DNA of 64,000 bases from Lepidodermella squamata (taxonomy: Eukaryota; Animalia; Gastrotricha), in NCBI GenBank assembly GCA_047495785.1, contig JBLDXI010000026.1, positions 1,116,001-1,180,000 of the forward strand, read 5' to 3'. Below, one piece after another: positions 27,267 through 64,000 of this stretch (within the stretch, counting starts at the first letter, position 1; each line of letters starts with the position of its first letter). A program made the translations under genes and the position numbers. Below the pieces are notes generated by a model. That model was given only the letters and a program-made list of their open reading frames with translations, did not search any database and was not told the origin of the DNA.

Positions 27267-27561
27267 AGAGCTTTATAAAGCGGCAACTAGTAGAAAAAAT
27301 GACTAACTAATGTTTGTTTTAAAGATAATTGGAATTCGAATTGTATCTTATTCTTGACGTTTCAACGTTGAATTACTCAGCGTTTTCAATAAAAACTGTC
27401 GTATATTATTTTATGACCGCTCTAACACCGGAATCGAGTTCGTGGCAGATTCGATGCTATTTTCCATCACTTCAAACTGCAGGTCGTACTGAAAAAGCCA
27501 TGACTCCGCGAAAAAGCGCTGATTTTTTTCTGTTCAAGCATCAAAATATAAGAGATAAGAG

Positions 27562-29724: not shown

Positions 29725-30024
29725 AAGAGACTTAGCGAATTAACGGGCGTTGGTTGATAAGGCGAACGCGATAGAAATAGGCGCAGGGGTACCACAGATT
29801 TCACGAGGGTTGAGCTTATCCAACATTATTCAGTGAATACAGAGGGCTCCTGGAGCAGAGGATTTAAATTAACGTCACGGTTTTATCTTAAATCTGCCTA
29901 CCTAATACCCCGCTATTCTCAATGCGCCATTGCCTGACCTTGGGCCAATGTGTAAAAATATGATGAAATGATGTAAACGTGTCGCTGCTTGGGTTACTTA
30001 TGCATCAACCCAAGCATTAGAAAG

Positions 30025-32211: not shown

Positions 32212-32569
32212 GGCTGGAACCCGTTGAAAAACTTCCCCCTATAAACTACTATCTAACGATGATATAAGACGTTATCTTGCAGAATTTGGCAAAATAAATA
32301 GATTGTTTAGTAACTGTCCTTCGAGTATGGCGACTTGTTTCTAGTGTTTTCTTTTTGCCCTTTGGAGCTTCAGTATGTAGATTCCTATCTAGTACGTAGA
32401 ACGAACCCTCGTGTGCACGAATTGCTTGATGACGTGAGTTTATGCCCATTCATAAAATGGTGATACTTAGCTTCAACACACGACTCTGGCACGCTGCTAA
32501 GTTAACAATATAAAATAGACTGAAATTTTACTTCTTCCTATTACACAGTCTTTTGAAAACTTAGCGACG

Positions 32570-34794
32570 ATGGTACAATTATCAGTGACAATTCTAATCA
32601 TCGCATTTATTGGTTTCCCCACAATGAATGCCGATGACTATGTAGACAGTATAACTACTACAACCCTAAGCCCCGATACAGTAACATTCAACAGAACTAG
32701 ATGGACAAGAAGCCCTTCTTCCACTCGGCCAATAAGGAGGCGTAACGCTACGACTTTGGATCGAGATTCGACAACAACTAGGGCTGCGAGAATTCGAGCC
32801 CTTGTAGCAGCCCAAGCTGGGGTTGATCCCGTTGCACAAGCTGGAGGGGTAAAATCTTGCCGCTATCCATTGCAGAAACTAAAAGGGCTTTAATTAGGAT
32901 GGAGATTACTGTCCTGGGCAATTTCAATGCAACAATTACGCATGTGTTCCGTATGAGTAACACATTTCTTACTAAACAATATTCATAATAGTTACCATAG
33001 GAAGGAATACCAATGCGATGGCTACTCTGACTGCCGTAAGAAGAAATGATTGTTCCGCAATTTTCTATAATCTCTACCTTAAAATAATAGGCGACAACAG
33101 TGATGAATGGAACTGTGCAGTTAAAACGAATCCCACAACTAAAGCAACATTCAAAAGGAAGCAGTGCGCACCCAGTGAATTTACATGCTTGGATGGAGGG
33201 TGTGTACGGTTAGTTGTTCAGTCCCTATACCTAGAAACATTATAAAAGTATCCTGTATCATTACTCAGGATGGAATACAAATGCGATTCTTACGATGTAA
33301 GTTGTATTTAAATTCAAGGAATGGTTTTTTAACTGCTCTTTGTTCCTATTAGGACTGTGGTAAGAATTCTGAGACTGAATGCCATTTCGATCTATTGTAT
33401 ACTCATATAACAGACGATTCAAGCGACGAAATGAACTGCAGATCTGCTCCTAAATTACAGAGCTGTGCGTCAAACGAGTTCAGCTGCAACAGTGGCGAAT
33501 GCATTCCGTAAGATTTTCAGCAGTCAACTCTCATGATAACTTGAATGATTAACATTTCAGAATTGATTACAAATGCGATACGTATGATGTAGGTAATCAA
33601 TCTATCCCTGAGGAATAACACTACATTTTATTATTATTTAGGACTGTGGTATGATGTTCCTTAATAGCAATGGAAATTTAACTACCTGTGTCTGAATAGC
33701 GGACTCAAGTGATGAAATGAATTGCAAAACAACTACGACTACGACAACGAAGCGGCCACCGACCACTCAAGCATCCTTTGGAGCTTGCGGCTTCGTGCAG
33801 TTCCAACGTGTGATAGGAGGCACAGAGGCAGACCCACATCAATTTCCATGGATGGTGCGAATGTTCGTTAAATTTGGCACGAAGCCAGGAAGATCGACAT
33901 GCGACGGCGCCCTCATTAACAATCAATGGGTTTTAACAGCGTCTCATTGCATTTATGAATTTGAGACTGGGTTGCAGGCTACTAGGTTTGTTCAACACCT
34001 GAAAATCATTCAGGAAAAATTATCTCAACATTTCTAGCGTGGAGTTGCATTTGAGGCGACATGATATGAGCTTAGATATTAGCGCCGACGGTGGTGTATT
34101 AAGAACGGCCCAAGTTGTGATTAAACACGAGAATTACGTCGGCAAAACTGCGACATCATCTTACGACAACGACATTGCGTTAATCAAGCTCAATTCTCCG
34201 GTTCAATTCGACACATGGCTGCGGCCAGTTTGCTTGCCGAATGAATCGATTTGCGATTCGGTCAATTCTGACAATACGGTTACGGTGGAAAAATGCGTTG
34301 GGAATGTTACCGTTGCAGGGTGGGGTGGTTTTCAGTACAACAGTAAGTTATAAGATTTTCAAAGACCTCACTCAATCTCCCTGGTTTCTTCATCCTCAGA
34401 CAAGGCAGCTAGTACCGTTTTACGAGTTGCTGATCTGCCGGTCCGATCGAGGGCTGATTGCTCTGACACTTGGCAATTGACAAAGAACCAAGTCTGCGCA
34501 GGCTATGGAAACCCTGGAACATGTGGGGTGAGAACCTCAAATGCATTTTTCATCTCTTCAGGAGTTTGTTAACAGGGTGATTCCGGAGGTCCAGTGTTTT
34601 GTTTAATCAACAAGCAATACATCACCGTTGGGGCAGTTTCCTTTGGATCGCCGATTTGCGGTGATTCAGATCGGCCTTCGGTAACTTAGAAGTTAAACTA
34701 TCGTCACTGATGCCTAAAAATCGACAACTTTCAGGTTTTCACGCGGGTCTGTTCCTACCTGTCATGGATTCGTCAGAAAATGGCGCAAAATTAA
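32570..34794 (+). CDS. SP4: signal peptide + Thr/Arg-rich N-terminus + 3 LDLa + S1A serine protease (triad intact)
   Basis: QR|VIGG, TASHC, NDIAL, GTCGGDSGGP; TATA-like TATAAAA at ~32509. Confidence 0.87.
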
Positions 34795-40586: not shown

Positions 40587-43530
40587 ATGAATCAGATCCG
40601 TTTCGCAATTTTAGCCTGCCTTTTCTTCGCAAGGCCAGCATCGTCGGCGGTAATCCACGATTCATAATATGCTTGCCATTTTCGTCTCTACTGGAATTTT
40701 TAAGGGTGATTGTCAAGTTGGAGAATTTTCTTGCAGAACGACAGGAATATGCTTTCCGGGAGGTTATGTGTACGTCAATCAGTAATAACTCAAGATTTGT
40801 AATTGCTTTCATGATATATCTATTCAGATGTGATGGGGACCGTGATTGCAGTAGGTTCCGCATACTTTGAAATGATTTGGTTTGCACTTATATTTAAAAT
40901 GGCAGCAGACGGAAGTGACGAAGAAAACTGTTCAAGTAGCCGAACTCAAACGACACCAAACACTGTGTGCTGCCTTTTACGTTAAATCCGCCATGTCTAA
41001 TTTCGTAATTCTAGACCCGGCAGACTCTGCAGCCGATCATCACTGCCCCCACTACGGCAGCTACACCAATCAGAGGAGTAAATTGGAAGAGTTGCTTGGC
41101 TTTGTGATTTTTACAATTTCAAATCAACACAGGGAGCTTGCTCATCCACCGAGTTCACTTGCAAATCAAACGGCAAATGCATTTTATCCTTCTATGTGTT
41201 GGTTTATTTATGTGCAAAGCATTTTAGATGAAAGCTTTAACCATTTCTTAGATGCGATGGCGGTCGTCCAGACTGTGGTGAGTTGGATTATGAAGTTGCC
41301 AATATCAGGAAATAGATATTTCGGAATTCAGAGGACGGAAGTGACGAGGCTGACTGCCGGACCACTACATCCCGTTCGACAACAACTGCCACTACCAGTA
41401 CAACTGATCAGGTATATTGCCTATAGAGAAACCCTGAAATATATTAAACAGGTTTTATCGTATTTATTGCAGGTATGAATGAATTCAGGAAGTTTACAAT
41501 AACTATAAAAGAATATTTAGAGTGGCTGTACTTCGGATCAGTTCGCATGTAGATCTAATGGCAAATGCATCCCCGCAAAATATGCGACGATGCGGTGAGG
41601 GAAAGAAGAAAAATGATTTTTCAAAAAACAACCACTTGTGTTTTTATATCGCAATAGTATCGTTTCTCTTCTTCATAAGTCGCAATTACGGAATATATGA
41701 GATTTAGCATTGGAAAATTGGTGAATTAGCTTAGAAGCATAGAATTTGCCGCTCGGAAATGTTCGAAAATACCAGAAACTCTACGTTTAATTCTCGGATT
41801 TTCATCAAAATATATGGCAAGGCAGCAATTATGGCTCTATTTCTGCTATCGGAATGATTAAATCGTGGGTTTTTATTAGGAGCATATTAGCCAGAGATCA
41901 ATTAGATAACAATTTCTGACAATAACATTGAAATAACCCCAATTAGCTACAAAATTGCATTTGAATAATAATAAAAAGCGTTGTTTCTTTAAGGATGCAA
42001 TTTTTCCCTTTTTCTTCTCACCGCATAGTCATTTTGAAGGCTACGTCAAAATCCTTTCAAACCCATAAACTTGGCGATTAGATCTTTCAAAATTATGTTT
42101 AGCCATTGAAACACTGATATTTCAGCTATTTACAATGCTGCAAACTTTTTTGAACACACTGTATTCTTACAGAGAAGGTGCACCGCTAACCATTTCGCGT
42201 GCAGAAAGATTTTTCAATGCATTCCAGTTAGTTATTAGTAAGTATGAAGCGCAAGTATAGCTATAAATGCTCAATCAAAAACTTCTGTGAGCTAGGCGTG
42301 ACAGTGAGCTTGATTGCAGTAAGGAAACCTGCAAAAGGTTATAAAATAGTTAGTTTGGTCTGCTTAAGGTGCGATGTTAATGACGAAACAAAAAGCACAT
42401 GTATTTCCAAAATATTTCCTATAATACTCCAAATCATATAAACATCTCCACGGTTTCTCAAGGACCGACGACAGGAGGTGAGATGGTACAATGAAAAGGA
42501 ACATTTTTATATGAAATGGCATTCAGCCGTCGTGCGGTGATGACGAATTCAGCTGCAAGTCGAATGGATTCTGCATTCCCAGTGATTTTGTGTGAGTCAC
42601 GTTCATCCTTCGCCTACGAGCACTATAATATTCTTTTATCATGATGCTTCAGGTGTGATGACGAAGCCGATTGTGGTAAGAGAAGTCGCGCCTAATTTTT
42701 GGAGGTGATTATTTTAAATTTTCCCTTAAAACTCAGTCGATGGTAGCGACGAAGCCGAATGCGACTCCACAAGCAGGGAGGTAATTTTTCTAGATACACT
42801 TCTACTTCTGAGAAAAAGCTTCATTCCATTTGAGGTAAATAACCCGGATATTTCGTGCGGGAGTCAATTCCGTTGCTCAAGTGGCCAATGCGTACCTGCC
42901 ACATTCGTGTAAGACTGTATCCATAATGTGATCATGATATTTATAACAAGATGAGCGCTTATGCCTTCCCATAGATGCGACGGGGATAGAGATTGTTGTA
43001 AGTTACAAGAATTACTATTAGCCTTTGGAGATAGATGATATATCATATGCTTTTGCAGCTGACGGAAGCGATGAAGCTGGCTGTAAGACAACAACGAGAG
43101 TGGTAAGGAATATCAGCTTTTGTTGAAATAGACTCAAAGTCCTATTATCTTTTTCAGGTGAGCAGGACATCGACCTCGCGAACCGGTTTCTGTAATGGAT
43201 TCACGTGTCGACTATCTGGAGAGTGCATTCTTTCTAACAGTGTGTAAGTCGCCATCTCTCGTTTTAGTTTTACCACGATGAAACTGTCAACCCTATTAAC
43301 TTTGTTTCAGATGCGATGGCAGAGACAATTGCTGTAAGTTGTGCTAACTACTCATGGGTTAATTGTAGATTACGCCACAATTTGCTAGTTGACGGTAGCG
43401 ATGAAGAGCACTGCTCCGCAACAACTACTCAAGTAAAATTCGATTGCTGCATTACGGATTGTTGCATAACTTGAATTTTCAGAGCCCTGCGACGACTTTT
43501 GTATGAGACGACCGATGGAGATAATCGAGG
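40587..43530 (+). pseudogene. Degenerate LDLa-only gene (copy A), tandem duplicate of 45129-48091
   Basis: Colinear with copy B, but the end of module 3 and all of module 4 are replaced by a TE-like insert (~41600-42161). Module 5 has a spliced TA|G stop, Cys->Arg, a 2-nt insertion and a lost donor. The 3' end is approximate. Confidence 0.65.
41600..42161. mobile_element. Tc1/mariner-like relic (only the right terminus is recognisable); a related end lies at ~44520-44725
   Basis: TTTTTGAACACACTG|TA at 42161 and TTTTTAGACACACTG|TA at 44725 with similar upstream sequence; absent from the paralogous copy B. Confidence 0.45.
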
Positions 43531-45128: not shown

Positions 45129-48091
45129 ATGAATCAGATCCGTTTCGCGATTTTAGGCTGCCTTTTATTTGCTAGGCTAGCATCGGCAGCGGTAATCCAA
45201 GATTCAAATTTGTATTACTATTTTCGTCACTACTGGAAATTTTTAGGGTACCTGTCAAGATGGAGAATTTTCTTGCAGAACAACAGGAATATGCTTTCCG
45301 GGAGGCTATGTGTACGTCTAATAGTAAAATTTTATTGCTTTCATGGAATTCTTTCATATTCAGGTGTGATGGGGACCGAGATTGCAGTAGGTTCTGCAAG
45401 CTTTCAGCATATTTGATGAGAAATTTGATATAATGACAGCTGACGGAAGTGATGAAGAAAACTGTTCAAGTAGCCGAACTCAAACGACATCAACCCCCGT
45501 GTGTTACCTTTAATTTTAAATCCGCCATTTCGAATTTCGTAATTCTAGATTCGGCAGCCGACCTCTACTACCACCACTACATCAACCAGAGGAGTAACTT
45601 GAAAACATTCTCTTGGCTTTGCGATTTTTATAATTTCAAATCAATAGCAGGTAGCCTGCGCATCCACCGAGTTCACTTGCAGGTCAAGCGGCAAATGCAT
45701 TTTATCCCGCTATGTGTTGGTTTATTTATGAGCAAACCATTTTAGATGAAAGCTTACCCCATTTCTTAGATGCGATGGTGGTCGTCCAGACTGTGGTGAG
45801 TTGAATTCTGAAGTTGCTAATACCAGGAAATTGTTATTCGGGGAATTTAGAGGACGGAAGTGATGAAGCGAACTGCCTGACCACTACACCAAGGGCAACA
45901 TCCCGCTCGACAACAACTACCACTACCAGTACTACTACTCGGGTATATTGCCCAGAGAAACTCTCGAAGATATCAAAAATACATTGTATCATATTTATTG
46001 CAGGTATGAATCCGGCTTGAGGATTTTAGCAGTCACTGTAACAGGATATTTATTAGAGTGGCTGTACTCTGGATCAGTTCGCGTGTAGATCTAATGGCAA
46101 ATGCATCCCCGCAAAATATAGGTATGTAAGGCTATTTTTGGTGAAAAACCCAAAATCCTTATTTTCTCGGCAGATGTGACGGAGGACGACCAGATTGTGG
46201 TAAGAAAATAGGCTGCATGCCTGATCTCTACAGATTGATACGGCACTAACTCCTAGATGATGGAAGTGACGAAGCAAGTTGCGGAACATCCACTGCCAGC
46301 ACAGTAATAATTTTTACGCGATTAGCGAAAAACATTACCTGTCCTTTTCAGACTAAACCTGCGGTATGAACGGCGTTTAAACTAGAGAATGGGATAATTT
46401 ACGCTGCTGTAATAGCTTAGCTGCTCGCCCGATCAATTCGCATGCAGAACGACTGGCCAGTGTATACCAGCTCGTTATCAGTAAGTTGTGAGGTCAGTCC
46501 TAATGATTTTGATACGACGTTATTTGAATGAAATAGATGCGATGGAGGCTGGCCTGATTGCCGTAAGACATGAAACTGATATTCCGAAATGGCAACGTAA
46601 ACTTCATTAAATTCAGTCGACGGAAGTGACGAAGCGAACTGTTGGCCATTTCCCTTCTCCACCTCGACTGTAAGCCTTTCATGAGACTTGAAAATACGGA
46701 ATCAGATGTTAATGTTTTAGCCTGGATCGAGATGGGTGATCTCGGTTAGTACGCGTAATTTGCTCCACAAGTGCTGCATGACTTATATTATATTATTCCA
46801 GAGAAGGTGCACCGCTAACCAGTTCGCGTGCACAAGGATTTTTCAATGCATTCCAGCTGATTATTTGTAAGCATCAAGCACAAGTATAGATATCAATGCT
46901 CAATCAAAAACTGTGAACTAGGTGTGACGGTGGGCTTGATTGCAGTAAGCAAAACTTGCGAAAGCTTAAGTAAAATGCGCATGATTATACTGGGGTCTGC
47001 TTAAGGTGATGGTAGTGACGAAACAAATTGCACATCAATTATTTCCGTAATATTTCATGTATAATCCTTCAAATCATATAAACATTCCTCGGTTTCTCAA
47101 GGACCGAAGACAAGAGGTGAGGTGGTAACATGAAAACGAACATTTTTTTCATGAAATAGCATTCAGCCGTCGTGCGGTGATGGCCAATTCAGCTGCAAGT
47201 CGAGTGGATTCTGCATTTCCAGTGAATATGTGTGAGTCACGTTCATCCTTTGCTTATAAGCGCCGTATAATAATTTTCCGTGATGCTTCAGGTGTGATTA
47301 TGATGCCGATTGTCGTAAGAAAAGTCGCGCCTAATTTTTGGAGGCGATAATTAAAACTTTTCCTTAAAACTCAGTCGATGGTAGCGACGAAGCCGAATGC
47401 GACTCCACAAGCAGGGAGGTAAATTTTGTAGATACACTTCTACTTCTGAGAAAAAGCTTCTTTACATTTGAGGTAAATAACCCGGATATTACGTGCGGGA
47501 GTCAATTCCGTTGCTCAAGTGGCCAATGCGTACCTGCTACATTCGTGTAAGACTGTATTCATAACGTGATCATGATATTTATAACAAGATGAGCGCTTAT
47601 ACCTTCCCATAGATGCGACGGGGATAGAGATTGTTGTAAGTTACAAGAATTACCATTAGCCTTTGGAGAACAATGATATAATATGCGCTTTTGCAGATGA
47701 TGGGAGCGACGAAGCTGGCTGTAAGACAACAACGAGAGTGGTAAGGAATATGAGCTTTTGTTGAAATAGACTCAAAGTCCTATTATCTTTTTCAGGTGAG
47801 CAGGACATCGACCTCGCGAACCGGTTTCTGTAATGGATTCACGTGTCGACTATCTGGAGAGTGCATTCTTTCTAACAGTGTGTAAGTCGCCATCTCCCGT
47901 TTTAGTTTTACCACGATAAAACTGTTAACCCTATTAAACCTGTCAATCTTCCTATAGATGTGACGGGGATAGAGATTGTTGTAAGTTACAAGAATTACCA
48001 TTAGCCTTTGGAGAAGAATGATATAATATACGTTTTTGCAGATGATGGAAGCGATGAAGCTGGCTGTACGAGAACTACGAAAATCGGATAG
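45129..48091 (+). CDS. Secreted LDLa-only protein (copy B): signal peptide + 8 LDLa repeats, no protease or TM domain
   Basis: MNQIRFAILGCLLFARLASA followed by eight C-x-F-x-C...C..|CD....DC|.DGSDE..C modules that splice in frame; ends AGCTRTTKIG-stop at 48091. Confidence 0.8.
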
Positions 48092-49387
48092 CTTTTCATC
48101 GTGGACTCGGGTATCGAATCACAATCGCAGTGGTAGAAAAATACCGAACGTCCAAAACCTTATTAATTATCAATATATAACAATGATGCATTAAACAGTC
48201 TTTAATCAATATCTTATCAAATCTAAAATATTTAATCAGTTATCAATTATTATCTTATCTTCATTCTTTTTCTGATTTTGGGGCTGCGTTTTAGAACAGG
48301 TCTGCCGAGTAAACTATGGCGATTTTCGAAAAATTCGCAAATTTTGAATTCAAAACTCCAGCCTCCTTTCAAAGTTTTACAAAATTTCATGACAAATTTA
48401 GAATATTGGTGAATGATGGAGGATGATGGTGAATATGAGATCGAAGTTATCCACATCCGAAGCGAGTCGGACTTCGCGTGGGATTCGGAATTAAATTTTG
48501 CGTGGCGAATGACCTTGACTATCAGGTTGACCAGGCCTGTTTCAGAAATGCTGAAGAATGAGAATTTGCGATCAGAAATATCCTACGAAATCAAACTGAA
48601 CTTGATCACATTTCATCAAACCATGCTGCAGATTTTAACCTTCATAATTAGGCAAGCATCAAGTACGACTGGAATGATGCGAATAATATTTTCCCTTTGC
48701 TTGTGAGCATAAGCATGAATCAGCTAGCGCAGCAAAAAAACGCGAAAATAGGAGTTATTAGCACTCGAGCCCGGTTACGTTTTTTTACTGGCCCGCGTAG
48801 AAGTTGTTTTTGGGCTTTTCAAATATCAATATAATGCCAATTGCGATTGGCGATATTTTGCAAATTCCTGGAAAATCAGTAAAAAATCTTCGAAGTTTGC
48901 TCTAGGTATCGACAAGTGGACCGTGATGCGGGGTACCTGGACCATTAAAGAACTGCTTGATTATCATCAACTTGATTAATTGATCACGAAATTTATTTAT
49001 ATTTTCCAAGAGTTTACTTCGCCGGTCTTTAAATCAATTACGTGGCCGAAAATGACATATACAGATGATATACAGCGTGAGAGCTGAGCCTTCAGGCCGC
49101 TGCCTCAACTCAAGAAAACTTTACGAACTTACAAGTTTTAATAATTCAAAAAGTGTTTGTCCGGCATGAATTCCTATAACGCAACGGGGTTAAAGTGCCT
49201 GCGAACCTCTTGGTTTGGATCTACTTGGTTGGCATTGTTTACATGGGCACATATACACACGAATTTTACGTGTCGTGAATGAGGTTTGCCTAGTTTTCGA
49301 TGCCGAAACACATCATTCGTTATGACACATGAGGCCGAGTCGATTAAGTGCACACCGCTAATTGCATTCCACTGAATGCGCACACAA

Positions 49388-49420
49388 TATAAAGCCATGA
49401 GCTCCCCTCAAGTGAGTGTT
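49388..49420 (+). promoter_or_regulatory. Core promoter (TATA + initiator-like) of SP8; the initiator block is shared with SP9 and SP10
   Basis: TATAAA followed ~20 nt later by CTCAAGTGAGTGTTGTA, which recurs at ~53612 and ~57601 together with an upstream CGTGCACAC..TAATTGCATTCC-like block. Confidence 0.45.
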
Positions 49421-49451
49421 GTAGTTTTCAAAATTTCATCTTAGAAGAAAG

Positions 49452-52035
49452 ATGCGCACGTACACTGGGCTCCTCCTGGTCGTCCTCTTGGCTCCTGCCG
49501 TTGTAAGCTTGTCTGAAACTAGGTGCGCCTTCTCTTTAAAAGAGTTTTCGGTTAGTTTGGGCAAGACGACAGTGATTTTGGCGATTGGAACGGTGGTGAT
49601 ACCGGAAGTCCAAGCAGCAATAACGGCGGTGGATCAAGGGGTCGATGCTCTGGGTTCACCTGTGGTGATGGGGCCTGCATAGAAGCGTCTTGGAAGTATG
49701 ACTATTGCCATTCGCAGACCAATTTAATACATATATATTTTTCCTCGCCTAGGTGCGATGGGGACGCAGACTGCAGTAAGAATAATCAGTCTTTCTCAAT
49801 ATTCAAACTTCTATTACGAATTTCGCTAGACGACGGAAGTGATGAGCGCAATTGCAACGGTCCTCTTCCGCCGGGCACCTTCGGACGAGAAGTACGCATC
49901 ATCACAAAAAGCTCCTAATTCCAACTGTATTTTGCTGTTTTTGTTTCAATTTCCAGTCTACATGCACGGGTTTCTCATGCAACAACGGGCGCTGTATCTC
50001 CGCTGACTATGTGTGAGTTCAATTTGTAATATGGTTTTCAAAGCTAAAAAGGAATGTTATAGGTGCGACAATGATGATGACTGCGGTTTGTCTTAGCAAT
50101 TTGCAACTCGAATTCGTAATAGAAGCATTATTCTTACAGATGACGGTAGCGACGAAGCCAACTGTGCAGCTGCCACTACTCCTAAACAGGCACAATGCGG
50201 ACGGGGCGAATTCAAGTGCAACAATGGCAGGTGTATAACAGGCTCCTATCTGTAAGAATATCAGAATGCTAAGATGTGGAATTAATTTGCCCTTATTTTT
50301 TAGTTGTGACGGTGACAATGACTGCGGTGAGTATCCTTAACGATATCAGTGATATCCGACCCATGTTCATCTTGGTTTAGGTGATCGAAGCGATGAAAGA
50401 AACTGCAGAGCTACAACTACAACACCAGTAAGTAGAACCTTACAAATCGGTGATCTGCAGAAATTAACTGAACTTTCCAAGGCTGGATGTGACGGGTTCA
50501 CCTGCAACAATGGAAACTGCGTTAGTTCGTCATATGTGTAAGTTGGGAAATCGGATTCATTCATGGCAGCCGTCAAAGATTCATTTTCTAATTTTTAGCT
50601 GCGATGGGGATGACGATTGCCGCAAGTTTCAATTATTTCTACCGGAATGTTATTTATTAATCGATATTCTAAATGAGCAGGCGATGGAAGCGATGAGAGA
50701 AACTGCCCCGGTTCAAACGGGAGAGTGAGTTATATAATTTATTGAACTGGCTGCAGCGGTATCACATTCAATACTTTGTTCCCAAGGCCAACAGTTGCGA
50801 CGGCTTTACATGCATGAATGGCAATTGCATTCAATCGAGCTATGTGTAGGTTTCCAATCAAAATTACAGTTTTTCCTTAATCCAATGTGATCACCTTAGT
50901 TGTGATGGCGACGACGATTGTGGTAAATCATCATGAATGAATCTTTATATGCCATAAAGTTCTGGCCCATAAATGCCAGGTGACAGAAGTGACGAAATCA
51001 TCTGCCGAGGAGCGGTAATTATAGCCTTTCTTGCCGAAATCGTATAGGCTAATAATTATCTTATAGGCTCCACAGACAACACGAACGACAACTCGACCAA
51101 CAACTAGACCGACAACTCGGACGACGACGCCACCAAGAGCTGCCCCAGCCCCCGCTCGAGCCTCGGCTCCGTCTCCTCCTCAGGCACCTCTACCCCCTGC
51201 TGGAAGTTGCGGCTTGACTAGTTCGAGCACCATGGCAGCAGTTGGTGCCCATCCTTGGATGGTTCGAATGGAAATGAAGTTCACAACAACCCCAGCTGGA
51301 CGTATCGTAATCTGCGGAGGGGCTTTGATTTCCGATCAATGGATCCTTACTGCTGCTCATTGCGTTACCGACGAAAAGGGTGGGAAAATTACTGATGTTG
51401 TGGTCCGTCTTGGCAGGAATGATCTCTCCCAGAAAAGCGAGCGAGGAGCTTATGACCTGGCCGCAACTCAGGTTTTCAAACATCCTAGCTACGATGCCAA
51501 CAACAAATGGTTTATGGATTTTGCGCTGGTGAAACTTCGGTCGAAAGCAGCCTTCTCCAGAACAATCCAACCAATTTGCTTGCCTGAGGGTTTGTGCAAT
51601 GCCACGATTCAGGAAACAGCAGCGTTTGCTGATAGTTGCAGGGAAGCTGTCGTTGCTGGCTGGGGAGTTTCAGACGGTAAACATCTTTGGATCTTGAATA
51701 TTGATTTTTGAATACTGTTTGTATCCTTCTTAGATGATCCCAGCCCCGACCAGCTGCTGGAAGTAGCAGTTCGCATCAATCCTCGTCAGCAATGTGATGA
51801 CAAGTATGGCCGACTATCGACTGCCCAAATATGCGCTGGAGACGGAACACGAGGCACCTGTCGAGGCGACAACGGTAGCCCGTTGATGTGCAAGCAGAGT
51901 TCGACTGGCCGTACTCATATCATTGGTGTTGTGTCTTGGGGCTACGTGGAGTGCGGAAAAAATGGTTATCCCTCTGTATTCGCTCGCGTCTGTACTGCCT
52001 TGCCATGGCTTAAGGAAATTATGGCTAATAATTGA
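49452..52035 (+). CDS. SP8: signal peptide + 5 LDLa + serine protease homologue (activation site deleted, Ser195->Asn)
   Basis: Reading frame intact; SST-MAAVG lacks GRIFGGT; TAAHC and MDFAL retained; GDNGSP. Confidence 0.82.
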
Positions 52036-53656
52036 TCTAAATGATCACCTGAAAACCTTTATTTATCGATACTGTTCTCAGATTACCTATGGATTCTGAT
52101 TAAGTACTTTTCTAGTTTGATTAAGGCCAAAGATAATAAAAATTTGACGAATAACAATCTTGCAAGTGAAAGTTGTCCGGGTATCAGTGCCGGATTTTCA
52201 ATTAGGCAAACAAAGCTACTGCTTTATTGCCCCGCGATTTTCGAGCCCGCAAAGAAAAACCATAAAGAAGAAATTATGTCCTAATGGCCCCCACGATTCT
52301 CGAGGTAGAATTAAACGTAATTGGGAAAGGCTTTGGTAACTTATTGGTGTAGACAATCGTGCTATGACCAGCTCCATCCGTTTCCGGATCAATTAGGACT
52401 TCTCCAGACCTTAGCAATCGTGACACAGTTACGCCGTTTTACATACGCCAGTGGCCTGTGATTCCTAATCAAGGGCTCGCTACCAAGTGCAAAACGCTCG
52501 CCACGATTGCTACAGTGCAGGGATAACTTTCTAGCGGAGGCACGGGGAGTTTGAAGTTTGACTCATCGGTCAATGCACACCGAAGCTTACCTCAACTGAA
52601 CACCCGCCTTTGTGTATTCACTTTTACTTGATTGTTTTCAGGGTGTTCCAATGGTACGATGCCAGCTTTCAGTTTGTGTATATTCGGTCTATACTAGGTC
52701 GCAAATGAGGAAAATCTGCTGAAAATGTATTTCCAGTAGTAACAAGCAAAATCCTGGCTACGCTAATTGCGTAATAAACGGTTCAGCCAAAACAGTTCAG
52801 TTTTACTTTGTGTGTTGTTTTCTTGCTATAATTGTTGCACTTGGCGCGTTGGTACTAGGATTGTGCGGTGCTCCCTTTTTAGCATAAATGAGCAAAATTA
52901 TGATGCCCTGAAGTCGATCAGCAATACTTCACGTCTCATGGCGTCTCAATTACAACCTCATCTTTGAAATGCAAAAAGTGGGCAGGAGCAGGGGTCATAA
53001 ATATTCCGTATTCCTTGAAGTACATAATCGCAAAATGGCGATGAAACAAGTCCAATACGCTGCACAAATCACGATGTTTTTAAACGAAACAAGACTTTTT
53101 TCATTGCCATGTTGTGCAAGAAAGCCGTAAACTTTCTTGAAAATTGACAAAACAGCCCAAGGCCCAAGTGACAATTATTCCGATTTTCCGAACAGCTTGG
53201 CCTGAAATTCTTCTATTTTCTTGAAAATCGAAGTTTGAAGTAAATAACAATATTCCACGAGGTAAATTTCGCTGATATTAATGCTCAGATCTTCTTGGCT
53301 TACTGCAGGCCCCGTCACAAATACACACGAATCATCCCTCGACTGTCAAACATGCAGCATTAAAAACAAAGGGTCTATCGTGATGCTAAGCGTGATGTTG
53401 AGCGTGTCATCTGAAATGGCATTTGAATCTTGGTTGACATTGTTGACATAGGCGCAGATACGCATGAATACGTTGGTGGGTATGAGCTTTGCCTAGTTTT
53501 CGATGCCTAAACACATCATTCGAAATGGCATTTGAAGCCAGTTTGATTACGTGCACACCACTAATTGCATTCCCTCGAACGACCACGCTAGAAATCTAAA
53601 CACGAGTTTCTCTCAAGTGAGTGTTGTATTTTCCAAAATTTCATCTTTTGAGAATA

Positions 53657-56343
53657 ATGCGAACCTACTCTGTGCTCCTCCTGGTCATCTTGGTGGCTCC
53701 AGCTGTTGTAAGTATCACTGAAACTGGGCCACATCTTCTTTCAAACATTTCTTGTTTAGTTTGGGCAAGATGAACAAAGCACTGATAATCCCGGTGATAA
53801 TAACGGTGGTAATAACGGTGGTAACATAGAAAGTCAAGGCAGCTACGGCTTTGATTCATGGCTTCGATGCCCAGGATTTTTCCCCTGTGATGATGGGTTA
53901 TGCGTTCCTATGCCTTGGAGGTAATACGATGCCGTGCATTCAAAATATATAATTAAATGTTGGCTCTTTCCCGTCTTAGATGCGATGGACAGCGGAACTG
54001 CGGTAGGGATAATTTAGAATTTTTGAAGTTCCTTCTTCCATCATCTTTTTTTATCGCAGGCGATGGAAGTGACGAACGCAATTGCAATAGGGGTCGCCCT
54101 CCAAGCCCCTCCGGGCGTGATGTAATGGCTCGCTATTTATCCTTTATATCACCTTTTCTTGTTTTGTTTCCTAGCCTACTTGCACAGGTTTCGCTTGCAA
54201 CAACGGTCGATGTATCTCACCTGACTATGTGTGAGTTCAGCTCATGAAAAATGATATTCTAAATTAATTAGGAATATTTCAGCTGTGACAATGAGGATGA
54301 CTGCGGTAAATGCATTTTAGCAATTCATAATTCGAAGTTGACGTCTTCTTACAGAGGACGGTAGCGATGAAGCCAACTGTGGAAGTGGTACCACTCCTAG
54401 ACCGGTATGATTTGAAAATCGCTGCTTACTGTGACTTTGATTAAGCCGATTCAAGGCACAATGCGGACGAGGCGAGTTCATGTGCAACAACGCCAAGTGT
54501 ATATCTAGCTCCTATGTGTAAGAACCCGCGTAGCAGATGTACATTAAATCAACGTTACCCTTCTTTTCCAGCTGCGATGGTGACAATGACTGCGGTGAGT
54601 ACGATGTACCATTGTTACGTTGACTCAAATCGGTGAAAACCATCTTCCTCCAGGTGATCGAAGTGACGAGAGAAACTGCCAAAGCAGAACAACATCAAGA
54701 ACAACAACAAAAACAACAACAAGACCAACAACAACAACAACAACAGTAAGTGCAATCTACTGGATTTTTAATCCGTAATAACTGCCAATTTTGTTAAGGC
54801 TAGTTCCTGCGATGATTTCACATGTTACAATGGAAACTGCGTTAATTCGCGATATGTGTAAAAATGATAACATTTGCCTTCGGCAGCTTTATTAATGACA
54901 TTTTCATGCTATCATTTCTAGATGCGATGGCGAGGATGATTGCCGCAAGTTTCTTGTATTTACAGTAAAACGCGATGTTATTATTAGTCATGAGCAGGTG
55001 ATGGAAGCGATGAGCAAAACTGCCGCGGCTCAACCGGAACAGTGAGTTATAATTGATCGAATTAGACTCAACGGTAACAAATTCAATACTTCTAAAACTT
55101 CCTCAAGGTCGACAGTTGCGACGGCTTTACATGCAGGAATGGTGATTGCACTCAATCGAGAAATGTGTAGGTTTACCATCAAAATTACAGTTCAACAATT
55201 TATCAAATTTTATCTCATTAGCTGTGACGGCTACAACGACTGTGGTAAATCAACATAAATAATTTTATTATTGGCCCTAAAGTTCTGGCGCCTTTAATTC
55301 CAGCCGACGGCAGTGACGAAATCAGCTGCAGGGTAATTATAGCCTTTCCTGCCGAAATCGGGTTGACTAATAATTTAAATCTTACGCACTGCAGACAACA
55401 ACTCAACCAACAACTCGACCAACAACTCGACCAAGAGCTGCGCCGGCACCTGCACCAGCTCCGGCTCCATCTCCTTCCCAGTCACCTTCGCCCTCTGCTG
55501 GAAGTTGCGGCTTGACTGGTTCGAGCACTGGCCGAATTTTCGGTGGCACCGTGGCCGCAGTTGGCGCTCATCCTTGGGTAGTTCGAATGGAAATGAAATT
55601 CACAACAACCCCAGCCGGCCGTATCATAATATGCGGAGGGGCTCTGATTGCTGACCAATGGATCCTTACAGCCTCTCATTGCGTCACCGACGAAAGCGGT
55701 GGGAAGATTACTGAAGTTCTGGCCCGCCTTGGCCGCAACGATCTTTCTCAGCGTAGCGAGCGAGGAGCTTATGACCTGACCGGAACTCAAGTGTTCAAAC
55801 ATCCTAGCTACGACCCCGAAAACAAATGGTTTATGGATTTTGCTCTCGTTAAACTTCGGTCGAAAGCAACGTTCTCCAGAACAGTTCAGCCGATTTGCCT
55901 GCCCGATGCTTTGTGTAACAGCACAATTTCTGCTTCAGCGGCTTATGCCGATAGCTGCACTGAAGCTGTCGTTGCTGGCTGGGGAATTTCTGACAGTACT
56001 TTCACAATTCTGAGATGCCAAATATTTACTATCTGTTTTAGATGATCCAAGTCCCGACCAACTCCTAGAAGTAGCAGTTGGTATCAATCCTCGTCAACGA
56101 TGTGACGACAAGTATGGTAGACTTTCAACTGCCCAGATTTGCGTTGGAGACGGAACACAAGGCACCTGTCGAGGCGACAGCGGCGGCCCGTTGATGTGCA
56201 AGCAGGGTCCTACCGGCCGTACTCATATCATTGGTGTTGTGTCTTGGGGCTACAAAGACTGCGGAGTGAATGGCTATCCATCTGTATTTGCACGCGTTTG
56301 TTCCGCCCTGTCGTGGATCAAGGAAACCATGGCTAGTAATTGA
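53657..56343 (+). CDS. SP9: signal peptide + 5 LDLa + S1A serine protease (triad intact)
   Basis: GR|IFGG, TASHC, MDFAL, GTCRGDSGGP; stop at 56343. Confidence 0.87.
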
Positions 56344-56443
56344 TCTTCTCGTATTACGTTTTAAAGATTGCGTCCACTAATAACTACTATATGAATTCAG
56401 ATTTTTAATTCCGATTCCATTCTAAGGCCAAAGGTAATATTAA

Positions 56444-56771
56444 CACTAGGAAAAAAACTAGGTTTATTAGCTGATTTTTAGCTCGGAGCCAAAACTGAGT
56501 CGTCAATTTCCATGCAAAAACACAGCTGATTAGAGGGACATAGGAGGGTTTATTAGCCTATCCCAGCCATGACCCGAGCTAATTAGCTTGTCTTTCATTG
56601 TGAGACAAAATAAAGTAGTTGCAAGACAATGAAAATCTAGCTTATTAGCTAGCAAAGGCTAATAAACCCTCCTATGTCCCTCTAATCAGCTGTGTTTTTG
56701 CATGGAAATTGACGACTCAGTTTTGGCTCCGAGCTAAAAATCAGCTAATAAACCTAGTTTTTTTCCTAGTG
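56444..56771. mobile_element. CACTA/EnSpm-type MITE, 328 bp, with perfect 116-bp terminal inverted repeats
   Basis: CACTAGG...CCTAGTG termini; 56444-56559 is the exact reverse complement of 56656-56771; flanked by AA on both sides (2-bp TSD). Confidence 0.9.
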
Positions 56772-57039
56772 AAATCGTCCCGAATAATGTTTGAATATAA
56801 TAAATGCTATAAGGAAAATTGATCGATAATTTATTTTAACTCAGCCGTAGATCTCTCTATGAACTCAGCTCTACTATTAAACATCTTAATATTTAATATT
56901 CATGTTACCCGAGACCATACAATTCGAGACCATACCCAAGACCATTCTCTCGACTCGCCAATTCCAAAACACCGCGAGTTGCATCAATGTTCAGCTCGAC
57001 CAATGGCTGAAAGGAGCGGCGAAGTCCGCGAGACAGGCC

Positions 57040-57365
57040 AGATTTGCTCAGTTTTATTCTCAGACTTAAGAATAGGCGTAACAATGCTAGTTTTCCAGTA
57101 GTCGGGATACTTGCGACAGTCAAGGATGCTGTTGTACAGGTTGACATGGGCGAGTCGTGCTGCTGAATTGTTGAGAGCGTCACGGAGTAGGTTTTCCGGT
57201 ATGTCGTCGGAGCCAGTCGTCTTCTTGTTTGATAATTTCTACAGGTTACGCAGTATATCCTCCTCAGTTAACTTGCGGAAGGAAAATACCTCGGTGTATT
57301 GGCTTGAACGGGAGAAGTTCGGCTTTGGTAGCGAGTTGGCAATACTGGCACCGATGGAGACGAAA
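57040..57365 (-). mobile_element. LINE ORF2 fragment (region just upstream of the RT domain), with an in-frame stop
   Basis: FVSIG...FSFRKLTEEDILRNL*KLSNKKTTGSDDIPENLL...LYNSILDCRKYPDYWKTSIVTPILK, the typical L2/CR1-group RT domain-0 motif. Confidence 0.8.
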
Positions 57366-57645
57366 TTCATTGACATAATTCACCTATCAAGCCTTCTTTG
57401 CGTTCTGGTACAAATTACTCAGAAATGCGTAAATACACACGAATCATCCCTCGACTGGCAAGCCTGCAGCATTGAAAACAAAGGGTCTTTATTGATGTTG
57501 AGTGTGTCATCTGAAATGATATTTCAAGCCGGGTTGATTACGTGCACACCGTTAATTGCATTCCCTCGAACGACCACGCTAGAAATAAGCACGAGTTTCT
57601 CTCAAGTGAGTGTTGTATTTTTCAAAATTTCATCTTCTGAGAATA

Positions 57646-60339
57646 ATGCGTATCTACACTGTGCTCCTCCTGGTCGTCTTGGTGGTACCAGCCGTTGTAG
57701 GCATCTCTGCGAAATCAGACCTAATATTGTTTTATAATATTTCTTGGTTAGTTTGGGCAAGATGAACAAGGCAGTGATAATACCGGCAATGATAACGGTG
57801 GTAATAACGTCGAAAGTCAAAGCAGCTACAGCGTTGGTTCAAGGTTTCTTCGATGCCTTGGGTTCACCTGTGGTGATGGGCAATGCATTGCTGTAACTTG
57901 GAGGTGAAGCAATCATGAGCATTTGGGGAATAATTAAATTTAGCCTCTTTCCTGTCTTAGATGCGATGGAGACGAGGACTGCAGTAGGAATAATTTGGAA
58001 TTTCTGAAGTGCTATCTTCCATCGATTGTTTATTAGGCGATGGAAGTGACGAACGCAACTGCAATAGGGGTCGCCCTCCAAGCCCCTCCGGGCGTGATGT
58101 AATGGCTCGCTATTTATCCTTTATATCACCTGATCTTGTTTTGTTTCCAAGCCTTCTTGCACAGGTTTCGCTTGCAACAACGGTCGGTGTATCTCAGCTG
58201 ACTATGTGTGAGTTCAGCTCATGAAAAATGTAATTCTAAATTAATTAGGAATATTTCAGCTGTGACAAAGACGATGACTGCGGTATAAGCATTAGCAATT
58301 CATAAATTCGAAGTTGACGTCTTCTTACAGAGGACGGTAGCGATGAAGCTAGCTGTGCAAGCGGTACCACTCCTAGACCGGTATGATTTGAAAATCGCTG
58401 CTAACTGCGAATTTTATTAAACCGATTCAAGGCACAATGCGGACGAGGCGAGTTCGCGTGCAACAACGCCAAATGTATACCAAGCTCTTATGTGTAAGAA
58501 AACGCATAACATAGAATAGATTGAATCACCATTTACCATTCTTTTACAGCTGCGATGGTGACAATGATTGCGGTGATTATAATTGTTACGCTGAGTCAAC
58601 TGCGTGAAAATAAGCTTATTCTAGGTGATCGAAGTGATGAGAGAAACTGCCCAAGCAGGACAACAACTACTACAACAACTACAGTAAGTACAATAAATTT
58701 GCTGGAATGCTGATCCGTAATAATTGCCAATTTACTAAAGGATAGCGGTTGTGATGGTTTCACTTGCAACAATGGAAACTGCGTCATCTCGCGATATGTG
58801 TAAATTGGGAAAATTTTCCTTCGAAAGCTTTTTTAATGCTCCAATTTTTAGATGCGATGGCGACGATGATTGCCGCAAGTTTCTTGTATTTGCAGTAAAA
58901 CGTGATTTTAATATTAGTCATGAGCAGGTGATGGAAGCGATGAAAGAAATTGCCCCGGGTCAACCGGAAGAGTGAGTTATTACAGATTGAAATAGTTTCA
59001 GCTGTATACGCAATTAAAAAATTTGAAAATCCAGAGCCGCACCACAACTGTAATAGTGAGTGAAACAATTGTTAGATGTGGCGGTACCAAAACTTTGAAC
59101 ATTTTCCGAAGGCGAACAGATGCGACGGCTTTACCTGCAGGAATGGCAATTGCATTCAATCGAGCTATGCGTATGTTTCTAATTGAAATTAGATAAAAAA
59201 CATCATGATTCAATGCAATTATCTCAGCTGCGATGGTGACAACGATTGTGGTAAGTAGATGTAAAATATAAGTGTGCCGTGAGTTATGACATCCAACTTC
59301 AGGTGATGGCAGTGATGAAGCTAGCTGCAACGCGGTAATTAGTAACTACATTTCTGAATTCATGTAAATAATTTTACCGTAGCCCCAGACAACCAGACCG
59401 ACAACTCGACCAACGACGCCGCCAAGAGCTGCCCCTGCACCAGCCCCGGCACCATCTCCTTCGCCGTCTCCTTCGCCGTCTTCCTCCGCAGCAAGTTGCG
59501 GCTTAGTTGGTTCGAGCACTGGCCGTATTTTCGGCGGCACGGCGGCCGCAGTTGGCGCGCATCCTTGGGTGGTTCGAATGGAAATGAAATTCACTACAAC
59601 CCCAGCCGGCCGTATCATAATATGCGGGGGGGCTCTGATTTCTGACCAATGGATCCTTACAGCCTCTCATTGCGTCACCGACGAAAGCGGTGGGAAGATT
59701 ACTGAAGTTCTGGCCCGCCTTGGCCGCAACGATCTTTCTCAGCGTAGCGAGCGAGGAGCTTATGACCTGGCCGGGACTCAAGTGTTCAAACATCCTAGCT
59801 ACGATGCAAAAAACAAATGGTTTATGGATTTTGCGCTCGTTAAACTTCGGTCGAAAGCAACGTTCTCCAGAACAGTTCAGCCGATTTGCCTGCCCGATGC
59901 TTTGTGTAACAGCACAATTTCTGCTTCAGCGGCTTATGCTGATAGCTGCACTGAAGCAGTTGTCGCTGGCTGGGGAATTTCTAACGGTATACTTCTCGAA
60001 TAGTAAAATCCTAAATAATTGCTAGTGTCTGTTTCAGATGATCCTAGCCCCGATCAACTGTTAGAAGTAGCAGTTGGAATCAATCCTCGTCAACGTTGCG
60101 ACGACAAGTATGGCCGACTTTCAACTGCCCACATATGCGTTGGAGACGGAACGCGAGGCACCTGTCGAGGCGACAGCGGTGGCCCGTTGATGTGCAAGCA
60201 GGGTCCTACCGGCCGTACTCATATTATTGGTGTCGTGTCGTTTGGCTATACAGAGTGCGGTGTTAATGGCTTTCCCTCTGTATTTGCGCGCGTTTGTTCC
60301 GCTCTGCCGTGGATCAAGGAAACCATGGCTAATAATTGA
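57646..60339 (+). CDS. SP10: signal peptide + 5 LDLa + S1A serine protease (triad intact)
   Basis: GR|IFGG, TASHC, MDFAL, GTCRGDSGGP; protease exon nearly identical to SP9; extra 15-nt linker exon (SRTTT) at ~59035. Confidence 0.87.
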
Positions 60340-61107: not shown

Positions 61108-64000
61108 ATGTTTTTCATAAAAAAGCTCCTTCTGTTAGGGCTGATTACTGGCGCTGTCGTTGTAAGAAAACATAAATTTAAGTGGGCCATCAAAAACCAA
61201 TTTCTTCATTCAGGATGGGCAGGAAAACGGAGATAATGCAAGTGTCGAAAGACGAGGTCCATGTTCTGGGTTCACTTGTGGGGATGGGAACTGTATATCA
61301 AGACTTTGGAGGTGACACATTTGCCACTTTTGATCAGCCATCATACCAAAACTATACACACTACACACTACACTATAAACACTATAACACTCAGCTAATT
61401 TGCCTGATTCCCTCGCAAATTTCGCCATGTAGAAACACAATGGCAAGATGTTTCTCCACGGAAACAATTTGACTGAGCAGCAATTGCCTACCTCAAATCT
61501 TATACCACGTGAAAGAGGAGCTCGCGTTCTATGTGCATGCTAAGTTTGGTAAATAACGGAGATATCCGTTTTGAGAAGCACTCGATTCAATAATGCAGAT
61601 CAAAGTTTTAGCTTGAGTGTGGTCGCTTTTTTCTCTACGGTCTAGCCATAGAGTATTCCCTTATTCCCACATGCCCACAATCCTGAGCCACTTTTTGTTA
61701 TTCATTATTCTTTATTTTCAAGGTGCGACGGAGACATAGACTGCAGTATGGAATTAATGCGAACTTATCAGAAAACGATGCTCAAACCTATTTTCACCAG
61801 GGGATAGGAGCGATGAAGTCAATTGTGATTCCTATAAACCTAACAGCTCTGGCCCCGATGTATGTTCGCATCGTTCTTATCAATTCGTTATGATTACCTT
61901 GTATTTTAAATACAAGCCCCTTTGTAAAGACGTTCCGTGCAACAACGGACGATGTATATCAGGCAACTTCATTTGCGACAGAATAGATGATTGCGGTGAG
62001 TTCAAGCACTTTAACGATTATTACTCCAAACAATGTCTCTTAGGGGATGGCAGCGACGAAGCAATCTGTGGTGGAAGACCTGAGTTTCATAACGTAAGAT
62101 CAGCAGCGATTTACAGGGTGTCCCATAAGAAACGCAAGCAAAGAAAATACACGGAAAAGGGATCAGAAACTCTAAAATGAGAGACGAAGTCACATCTCAT
62201 GGCGAGAATAATAATTAAGTATGTTGATGGGATTAGAAACGTCCGAAGAAATTTGGTTCAACAGGGTAAAATACCGAAAATTACCAAACCGGTTACCATC
62301 GGGGTTTTCTGGAAATTCTTCAGCAAATGTTTTTATTCCTTCGGTTAAATCGCGGCTAAAATATGGAATACTCTCTCAGCAGGTTTAATTTGAATAATTA
62401 GTTGAATTTCCTAAAAAAAAGTTGTTAGATTAAAAAATGATGCGCAACTTTTGGGACACGCTGAATAATGAGTTTAGGTATTTGCGCTTTTATTTTTGCA
62501 TGTAATAAAGAGTACGTGTGGCAGTAACGAATTCAGATGCGACAACGGCAGATGCATAACAAGCAATTATATGTATGAATTCAAAACATTGCTTATTACG
62601 GTAATCCCAATAATATTTCAATGCAGCTGCGACAGCGATAATGACTGCGGTTAGTTTATCTCGGTTACAACCATTTCAACTCTCCACATTCGAATGTTCT
62701 ATCTGTAGTTTTGAGGCTCTTGTATTGAATTCCGAAGAGCTCCGCAGAGCATATGTCAATTTTAAGTTTAGTTTATGTAAATTGAATGATTTTACCGATA
62801 TCGTCTAGCCGAGTAGCAATCATCAAAAATGTCATGAAAGCATGAAAGCTATACAGGGCCTAGCGCCTAGCTGTCTGAAAAGTGTCTCATTCATCCATAA
62901 CTCAAATTACATTTTTTGTCGGAGCCTTAAATTGGAGGTTGTGAGATATAGTTAAGTACCTATTGCTTAAGGTGATCAAAGCGACGAAATAAACTGCGCG
63001 AGCCACCAGCCAACACCTACAGCACAAGTAAGACCGATAATTTCCATGATAGGTAATATAAATAACACATTTCCAATTTGGATATTCAGCACGCAACACA
63101 GGAGAAAGAAACTCTAGCGGTCCTGGCAAAGTCAACTGAAACAAACGCTTTCGATTTGCCCAATCAAGCGGCTCCAATATCTACCTCGCATCCCTTTTCT
63201 GACCCTTCTATTTCAACTTCCATCGTTGGTTGTGGCTTGATCAATTCCAGTGCGGACAGCGTTGTCGGTGGAAATGTGCAAGCCATTAATCCTCTCCCTT
63301 GGGTGGCTTCCCTGTATTTTGAGGATGGTAGAGTGGACTGCTACGGGGCACTGATTTCTGATCAATGGATCCTTACTGCTGCCGAATGTGTTAGGGACAC
63401 GAAACGTCCCGGAAAAGTAACCATAGTGTTGGCAAGTCTTGGCCGCAAAGAGCAGTCTTTAAATGTGCGAGATGCTTACGACATGTACGGCGTTAGGAAA
63501 TTCTCACATCCTATGTTCTTATGGGGTTCAGGGAAAATGAATTTCGCGCTTATCAAGCTTCGTTCGAAAGTCTCATTTTCTAGCAGAGTACAGCCGATAT
63601 GCCTGCCTGATGCATCAATGTGTGATAACATCTCCAACTCTGAAAGAATGGCAAAAGTCGATGACTGCACAGTAGCTACCATGGCTATAAGAGGTAGGCA
63701 GTTAACTTTTCGTTGCAGATGTTTGATATTTTTGATTTTTTCATTCTTTTTGAGATTTTTATTGATTTTTATTGATGATTTTTGCATGGAATTTTTCCTC
63801 AGATATAGAAAATGCCCAGATATTGGCTGCTGTCAACGTAACCGATCGGCTGAGTTGTAATGACCTAAGATACCTGCCATTGTCGATAGCCCACATATGC
63901 GTCCGTGGACCGGAAAACCTACGCGACGCAGCCCTCGACGGTGGTCCACTTATTTGTAAGCAGCGCCTGACTGGCCGAGCTCATGTGATAGGCATTTTTT
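61108..64000 (+). CDS. SP11: signal peptide + 3 LDLa + serine protease homologue with all three triad residues replaced (3' end beyond the window)
   Basis: [18 protein letters not shown]; DS-VVGG; TAAEC (His->Glu), MNFAL (Asp->Asn), ALDGGP (Ser->Asp). Confidence 0.75.
62114..62463 (+). mobile_element. Tc1/mariner-like MITE (350 bp) in an SP11 intron
   Basis: TA|CAGGGTGTCCCA ... TGGGACACGCTG inverted termini; a second diverged copy lies at 18494-18845. Confidence 0.75.

Follow-up and report, generated by a model that had tools for sequence, protein, structure and literature searches.

Can a single gene make many different LDLa proteins by splicing together parts of non-adjacent repeats? This question is raised by a stretch of 64,000 nucleotides (nt) from the gastrotrich Lepidodermella squamata (assembly GCA_047495785.1, contig JBLDXI010000026.1, positions 1,116,001 to 1,180,000), referred to here as the window and numbered from its first letter. 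Between positions 45129 and 59340 the window carries an LDLa-only gene and three genes for proteins with LDLa repeats and a trypsin-like domain (SP8, SP9 and SP10). A first-pass annotation of this range had proposed that the short exons into which each LDLa repeat is divided could be joined across repeats. We found that the same two internal split positions occur in 23 of 23 LDLa repeats (eight in the LDLa-only gene and five each in SP8, SP9 and SP10). The reading that we favor, and hold with good though not full confidence, is that these genes form a tandem array of paralogues with an inherited three-exon unit, constitutive colinear splicing, and gene conversion at the level of DNA.

The three-exon LDLa unit

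Each repeat is divided into an exon A that encodes Cys1-3, an exon B that encodes Cys4-5, and an exon C that encodes the DGSDE motif and Cys6. The donor of exon A is always in phase 2, one residue past a conserved aromatic residue; the A-B intron, also in phase 2, lies one codon ahead of Cys4, and the B-C intron, in phase 1, directly past Cys5. Exon B runs from phase 2 to phase 1 and measures 23 nt in 20 of the 23 repeats and 26 nt in the remaining three (repeats 2-4 of the LDLa-only gene), while exon C runs from phase 1 to phase 0. The A exons (56-86 nt) all start in phase 0 and the C exons all end in phase 0. These edges (the end of A, both ends of B and the start of C) were fixed for all 23 repeats, in which A-B introns measure 50-76 nt and B-C introns 48-61 nt.

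Joined in this way, the tail of A together with B and C always reads in frame as x-[YFW]-x-C-D-G-x-x-D-C-x-D-G-S-D-E-x-x-C. The acidic calcium-cage motif C-D-x-x-x-D-C-x-D-G-S-D-E arises at every one of the 23 joins, with slight departures in some (DRSDE, CDNDDDC, CDYDADC and CDGQRNC). In the spliced models we counted eight, five, five and five six-cysteine units with LDLa spacing within approximately 40 residues (LDLa-only gene, SP8, SP9 and SP10, respectively), and Cys3 and Cys4 are uniformly spaced across repeats. A six-frame motif scan likewise recovered the pieces of the LDLa consensus (Cys1-3, CDGxxDC and DGSDExxC) recurring in order on the forward strand, and the pattern AG|N-Cys..Cys-N|GT has 27 matches on the forward strand of the window versus 2 on the reverse strand.

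Exon coordinates were curated by hand and checked for phase and closure of the open reading frame, since enumeration of paths with weight matrices missed weak sites and sometimes chose wrong paths. All four models run from a methionine and hydrophobic leader to a stop codon with no internal stops. They contain 79 introns of 46-114 nt (median 54 nt), in a window of approximately 42% G+C that is eukaryotic in character and rich in very short introns. Intron ends are GT-AG in 76 of 79 cases and GC-AG in the other three, and the GC-AG introns (donor GCAAGT, at 50622, 54945 and 58875) occupy the donor of exon B in repeat 4 of SP8, SP9 and SP10 alike. Exons of 30 nt or less account for 28 of 83. Among the exons in question only five are symmetric, and all five are linker exons, four in the LDLa-only gene and one in SP10. 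The features of the four models are as follows.

45129-48091, forward strand: LDLa-only gene, copy 2, intact; 29 exons, 444 amino acids (aa), signal peptide and 8 LDLa repeats
45247-45311, 45648-45715, 46057-46121, 46416-46480, 46802-46866, 47167-47231, 47473-47546, 47796-47881, forward strand: A exons 1-8 of LDLa-only copy 2
45364-45386, 45770-45795, 46174-46199, 46537-46562, 46922-46944, 47292-47314, 47613-47635, 47958-47980, forward strand: B exons 1-8 of LDLa-only copy 2
45440-45498, 45851-45942, 46257-46303, 46617-46669, 47006-47046, 47375-47418, 47697-47740, 48042-48091, forward strand: C exons 1-8 of LDLa-only copy 2
45549-45593, forward strand: predicted symmetric linker exon, 45 nt, Thr/Ser-rich, phase 0 to 0, AG/GT flanks
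46352-46363, forward strand: predicted symmetric linker micro-exon, 12 nt, phase 0 to 0, AG/GT flanks, flanking introns of 48 and 52 nt
46721-46744, forward strand: predicted symmetric linker micro-exon, 24 nt; an alternative donor would shorten it to 15 nt
47102-47116, forward strand: predicted symmetric linker micro-exon, 15 nt, with a counterpart in copy 1 near 42462-42476
49452-52035, forward strand: SP8; 17 exons, 562 aa, signal peptide, 5 LDLa repeats, Pro/Thr linker and trypsin-like domain
49753-49775, 50063-50085, 50304-50326, 50599-50621 (GC donor), 50900-50922, forward strand: B exons of SP8
53657-56343, forward strand: SP9; 18 exons, 580 aa, signal peptide, 5 LDLa repeats and trypsin-like domain
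53980-54002, 54283-54305, 54572-54594, 54922-54944 (GC donor), 55222-55244, forward strand: B exons of SP9
57646-60339, forward strand: SP10, running beyond the end of the annotated range; 19 exons, 575 aa, signal peptide, 5 LDLa repeats and trypsin-like domain
57961-57983, 58260-58282, 58550-58572, 58852-58874 (GC donor), 59228-59250, forward strand: B exons of SP10
59035-59055, forward strand: predicted symmetric linker exon of SP10, 21 nt

The identical split and phases that the first-pass annotation had described are thus borne out in 23 of 23 repeats, with closed frames in all four models, and the coordinates of the B exon it gave as an example (45364-45386) are exact. Its statement that every repeat consists of separate A, B and C exons holds for the split positions and needs correction for the exons themselves. 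In SP8, C2 and A3 form a single 112-nt exon (50140-50251), from which the 51-nt C2-A3 intron of SP9 (within 54355-54517) and SP10 (within 58331-58493) is exactly absent; nor is A1 of each SP gene a standalone exon, being fused with N-terminal sequence. Apart from the SP8 fusion, the whole repeat is a same-phase (0-0) cassette throughout. The same layout extends beyond the annotated range to a first copy of the LDLa-only gene (40.6-43.5 kb) and to repeats 1 and 3 of SP11 (61.1-64 kb), where the A and B pieces of the second repeat make up one exon (approximately 61918-61996).

Ahead of exon A2 of the LDLa-only gene lie tandem acceptors (AG at 45646-45647 and 45649-45650), both in frame and differing by one Gln codon.

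Probable descent of the layout and exchange between repeats

We asked whether the three-exon unit is a general property of LDLa repeats in this animal. The genome searched comprises 121.2 Mb in 151 contigs, and a six-frame search with the LDLa profile (PF00057) returned 617 candidates; the 150 of these that were scored are without exception full-length repeats lying in one open frame, and hence not split. Genome-wide, we found 54 B-type micro-exon patterns versus 7 in a reversed control, and 40 of the 54 lie on contig C26, which carries the window, in clusters at 0.859-0.866 Mb, 1.015-1.017 Mb and 1.157-1.193 Mb. The three-exon LDLa repeat is a trait of one paralogous family and not a general feature of this animal's LDLa repeats. 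Identical B-type micro-exon matches were also seen at C127:7467-17603, a small contig with matches in both orientations, and at C26:1014736-1017292; this identity may point to a haplotig, or else to an artefact in which amplified DNA was assembled as a palindrome.

The family would have begun with an ancestor in which one LDLa repeat gained two introns, one in phase 2 ahead of Cys4 and the other in phase 1 past Cys5. Amplification of this three-exon unit in tandem, then duplication of the gene, would place introns at the same positions and in the same phases in all repeats, and would yield an array of secreted-protein paralogues (an eight-repeat LDLa-only protein and three trypsin-like proteins with five LDLa repeats) in a short-intron genome. 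Exons of different repeats would then be compatible in frame because one three-exon unit was amplified, so that the compatibility of non-adjacent exons would be inherited and not designed. The 54-bp exon units of fibrillar collagens offer a parallel: their sizes and phases are uniform by descent, and any combination stays in frame without that being a function. Unlike the collagen units, the module here is a cysteine knot in three exons with asymmetric internal exons.

Descent with DNA-level exchange can be followed between the two copies of the LDLa-only gene, which carry the following features.

40587-43510, forward strand: LDLa-only gene, copy 1; three-exon layout, decayed
47948-48080, forward strand: converted tract in repeat 8 of copy 2, in which repeat-7 sequence runs from the last part of the A-B intron through B and the B-C intron into C
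47603-47735, forward strand: donor of the converted tract in repeat 7 of copy 2, comprising B, the B-C intron and C

Repeats 1, 2, 6, 7 and 8 of copy 1 are split as in copy 2. Positions 992-1662 of the copy-2 query, which hold B and C of repeat 3 and all of repeat 4, are without counterpart in copy 1, where approximately 580 nt of unrelated sequence (41585-42170) stand in their place. In repeat 5 of copy 1 the A/B junction creates an in-frame TAG, Cys4 has become Arg, and the DGSDE motif and Cys6 are gone. This damage suggests that copy 1 is probably a pseudogene, although a transcript without the damaged exons is predicted to stay in frame because all units are phase 0-0.

The tract at 47948-48080 and its donor at 47603-47735 are 92% identical over 133 nt, rising to 95% in the intron, and taken piece by piece B, the B-C intron and C of repeat 8 in copy 2 are 92-96% identical to those of repeat 7. 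Exon A8 of copy 2 is 100% identical to A8 of copy 1 over 50 nt. Repeat 8 of copy 2 tracks repeat 8 of copy 1 until approximately 47937, where this homology stops, and tracks repeat 7 downstream. In copy 1, repeat 8 retains unrelated B and C exons, and its 3' end differs. The outcome in the intact LDLa-only gene is an eighth repeat that is chimeric in the genome itself, A8+B7+C7. Of the two versions of repeat 7, that of the intact gene is the nearer to the converted tract, and the conversion therefore postdates the gene duplication. The SP genes show a related mosaic. Introns included, the identity of SP9 and SP10 is 90-98% in two stretches, one running from C1 to A3 and the other covering B4 with its intron, and 62-76% elsewhere, while in the repeat-5 introns SP8 and SP9 are the closer pair. 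These identity blocks among SP8, SP9 and SP10 start and end within repeats. The closest relative of each repeat is the same-numbered repeat of a paralogue, and repeat number and order are kept in all three genes. The chimera and the SP mosaic are ordinary gene conversion among tandem paralogues; the repeats do swap sub-module pieces in the DNA, as repeat 8 shows, and such exchange is apparently tolerated.

A stronger claim, also made in the first-pass annotation, is that the layout itself favors recombinational shuffling. On this reading the layout would matter mainly in the DNA, with short introns serving as neutral breakpoints for conversion or unequal crossing-over and thereby speeding diversification in frame. 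It is the best of the alternatives, and we regard it as possible but rather doubtful. The 133-nt replacement of B, intron and C in repeat 8 begins within the A-B intron, the SP9/SP10 block of high identity from C1 to after A3 has its edges inside repeats, and repeat number varies, with eight and five in the models and three recognizable by eye in SP11. Against this, there is one clear inter-repeat event only, with about half of the sequence intronic, chance alone would place the ends of tracts of approximately 130 nt in introns, and SP8, SP9 and SP10 retain five colinear repeats. Comparison of haplotypes did not add to this, as a second haplotig of the locus was not found in the assembly, the only other copy being LDLa-only copy 1. 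Exchange itself is thus upheld by the chimeric repeat 8, with which the SP mosaic agrees, while one inter-repeat event is too few to show that the layout favors it.

Colinear or combinatorial splicing

The splicing proposal held that joining A of one repeat to B of another, or B to C, keeps both the frame and all six cysteines. Its frame logic is correct: all phases match, and since the Cys3-Cys4 spacing is uniform, hybrids would fall within the natural range. That such junctions are used is the part of the claim that found no evidence. Regulated combinatorial splicing would pair A donors with later B exons and B donors with later C exons, giving proteins that have fewer repeats and whose calcium-cage and ligand surfaces are hybrid, in effect a generator of diversity. 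If true, it would be a combinatorial system within a folded domain, not between domains, and a novel means of diversifying a binding domain from within. Compatible phases and uniform spacing speak for it, as do the A8+B7C7 chimera in the intact copy, by which hybrid repeats are apparently tolerated, and the secreted, expanding nature of the family, which would suit a role in recognition. Whole-repeat skipping of LDLa is moreover real in ApoER2 (PMC7410921). We nonetheless consider combinatorial splicing very improbable, and the phase compatibility on which it draws is predicted by descent alone.

Several features speak against it. A non-adjacent junction would excise 291-464 nt, five to eight times the median intron, and each such event would have to ignore three to four intact exons with good sites. 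In introns shorter than approximately 250 nt, a donor pairs across the intron with its closest acceptor (PMC9225289), and introns with a median of 54 nt therefore favor nearest-neighbor pairing. Across eukaryotes, exon skipping accompanies weak splice sites and long introns on either side of the exon (PMC6142364). Since the length of a B exon is never a multiple of three, joining A directly to C shifts the frame; because of this, the B exons are obligatory. Docking/selector complementarity, on which exon choice of the Dscam type depends, was not found in 45129-48100, where the only inverted repeat is one AT-rich pair of 18 nt. The conservation of repeat number and order in SP8, SP9 and SP10 also speaks against a system that varies both. 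With short introns, asymmetric B exons and no selector, combinatorial splicing is disfavored by the architecture and remains unsupported.

Under the favored reading of an inherited unit, splicing would most likely be constitutive: introns of 46-114 nt would be recognized by intron definition, with every donor joined to the closest acceptor, and the mRNA would be colinear. The 23-nt exons must be processed by a spliceosome acting across introns of approximately 54 nt. Owing to the size of the spliceosome, two complexes cannot occupy both sides of a 23-nt exon simultaneously. The introns flanking B are therefore probably removed one after the other, and the 23/26-nt B exons would be joined stepwise.

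Several points weigh against this reading. Some donors are weak (GTTGGT, GTTTGT, GTATAA, GTAATA and GTAAAA), and in a few species exon skipping is linked with short introns (PMC6142364). The introns of SP11 measure approximately 320-400 nt, and this spliceosome can therefore remove lengths of the kind that non-adjacent junctions require. In addition, we infer constitutive splicing from the architecture alone.

Known systems help to place the locus. The first-pass annotation had likened it to the schistosome micro-exon genes (MEGs), whose exons are mostly multiples of three and whose introns are long, 0.1-5 kb (10.1101/2023.06.21.545858). The likeness lies in secreted products, many very short exons and tandem expansion of the family, with isoforms by exon choice conceivable. 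On exon symmetry and intron length the analogy fails (10.1101/2023.06.21.545858): unlike in MEGs, the micro-exons here are asymmetric (23/26 nt), the introns measure 46-114 nt, and the exons encode pieces of a domain that is folded and locked by disulfides. For LDLa number varied by splicing, the nearest actual precedent is ApoER2/LRP8, in which, as in VLDLR, alternative splicing alters the number of LDLa repeats and tunes ligand binding (PMC7410921). In these genes, however, whole repeats or blocks of three occupy single exons that are skipped between long introns, without chimeric repeats, whereas here each repeat takes three exons.

Under the last alternative, the sequence separating the motif pieces would not be intronic, and the loci would be repeats that have decayed or been wrongly assembled. 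We regard this as scarcely credible: copy 1 is truly decayed, and a published L. squamata assembly, whose identity with the present one is unproven, was made from amplified DNA (PMC11660948), but the 79 introns are canonical at their ends and vary little in length, each of the four reading frames is complete from signal peptide to stop, three paralogues share a GC-AG intron at one and the same site, and strand and shuffle controls are clean.

Predicted proteins, intron density and neighboring features

Profile scores were taken exon by exon, with a curated cut-off of 24.1 bits for Ldl_recept_a (PF00057). The A exons align to positions 2-20 of this profile and single exons score 15-18 bits, below the cut-off, while the fused C2+A3 exon of SP8 reaches 27.6 bits and exceeds it. 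The large 3' exons match Trypsin (PF00089), with E 8e-25 in SP8 and E 1.6e-25 in SP9 for the first protease exon. SP9 and SP10 keep the RIFGG activation site and the TASHC and GDSGGP motifs. In the protease exons of SP8 (51067-52035), GDNGSP replaces GDSGGP, with Asn at the catalytic Ser, and a 21-nt deletion removes the R|IFGG activation site found in SP9 and SP10; SP8 is thus probably a non-catalytic protease homologue. The SP proteins are predicted to be secreted multi-LDLa trypsin-like proteases, and the product of the LDLa-only gene is predicted, from its sequence, to have eight calcium-binding repeats with Thr/Ser-rich linkers between them. A comparison of the SP9 protease exon with proteins gave one distant match (33% identity), under a length window that left out full-length relatives of approximately 570 aa.

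In domain order the SP proteins resemble matriptase/TMPRSS, corin, enteropeptidase and Drosophila Nudel, with N-terminal LDLa repeats, a C-terminal trypsin fold and an R|I-x-G-G activation site. Unlike S1 proteases of the matriptase type, they have a signal peptide, no transmembrane, SEA, CUB or frizzled domains were seen in them, and SP8 is without activation site and catalytic Ser. In the genes of vertebrate LDLa proteases each LDLa repeat typically lies in one exon with phase-1 introns on both sides. A search of the literature on intron positions within LDLa modules found nothing usable. What is unusual at this locus is the exon architecture; the domain and the kind of gene are both known.

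The splitting appears to go further in the SP genes upstream (25668-33653), where we found seven candidate 7-nt exons of the form AG|GAYTGYN|GT (Asp-Cys5) versus 0.09 expected by chance; there the B piece appears to be cut once more, giving four exons per repeat. A small disulfide-locked module is spread over three exons, or four where the 7-nt exons are counted, in one family only, in a genome with at least 150 unsplit LDLa repeats elsewhere. Within the family genes, intron density per kb of coding sequence is approximately 19-21 in the LDLa part and approximately 1 in the protease part. For the reconstructed ancestors LECA (the last eukaryotic common ancestor), Uropisthokonta and Urholozoa, Table 1 of PMC6142364 gives 4-6 introns per kb. 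If it is spliced constitutively, as we expect, the split LDLa family bears on the gain of introns and on their spread via repeat amplification.

Two further observations concern the sequence flanking the SP genes. A conserved block of approximately 100 nt lies just 5' of the start codons of SP8, SP9 and SP10 (49290-49420, 53490-53620 and 57510-57620, respectively) and is probably a shared promoter or 5' untranslated region. Between SP9 and SP10, at 56444-56771, we found an inverted repeat of 124 nt, 98% complementary, with an 80-nt loop. This element of approximately 330 nt is dispersed, with at least five other full-length copies on other contigs at 92-97% identity, and it resembles a miniature inverted-repeat transposable element.

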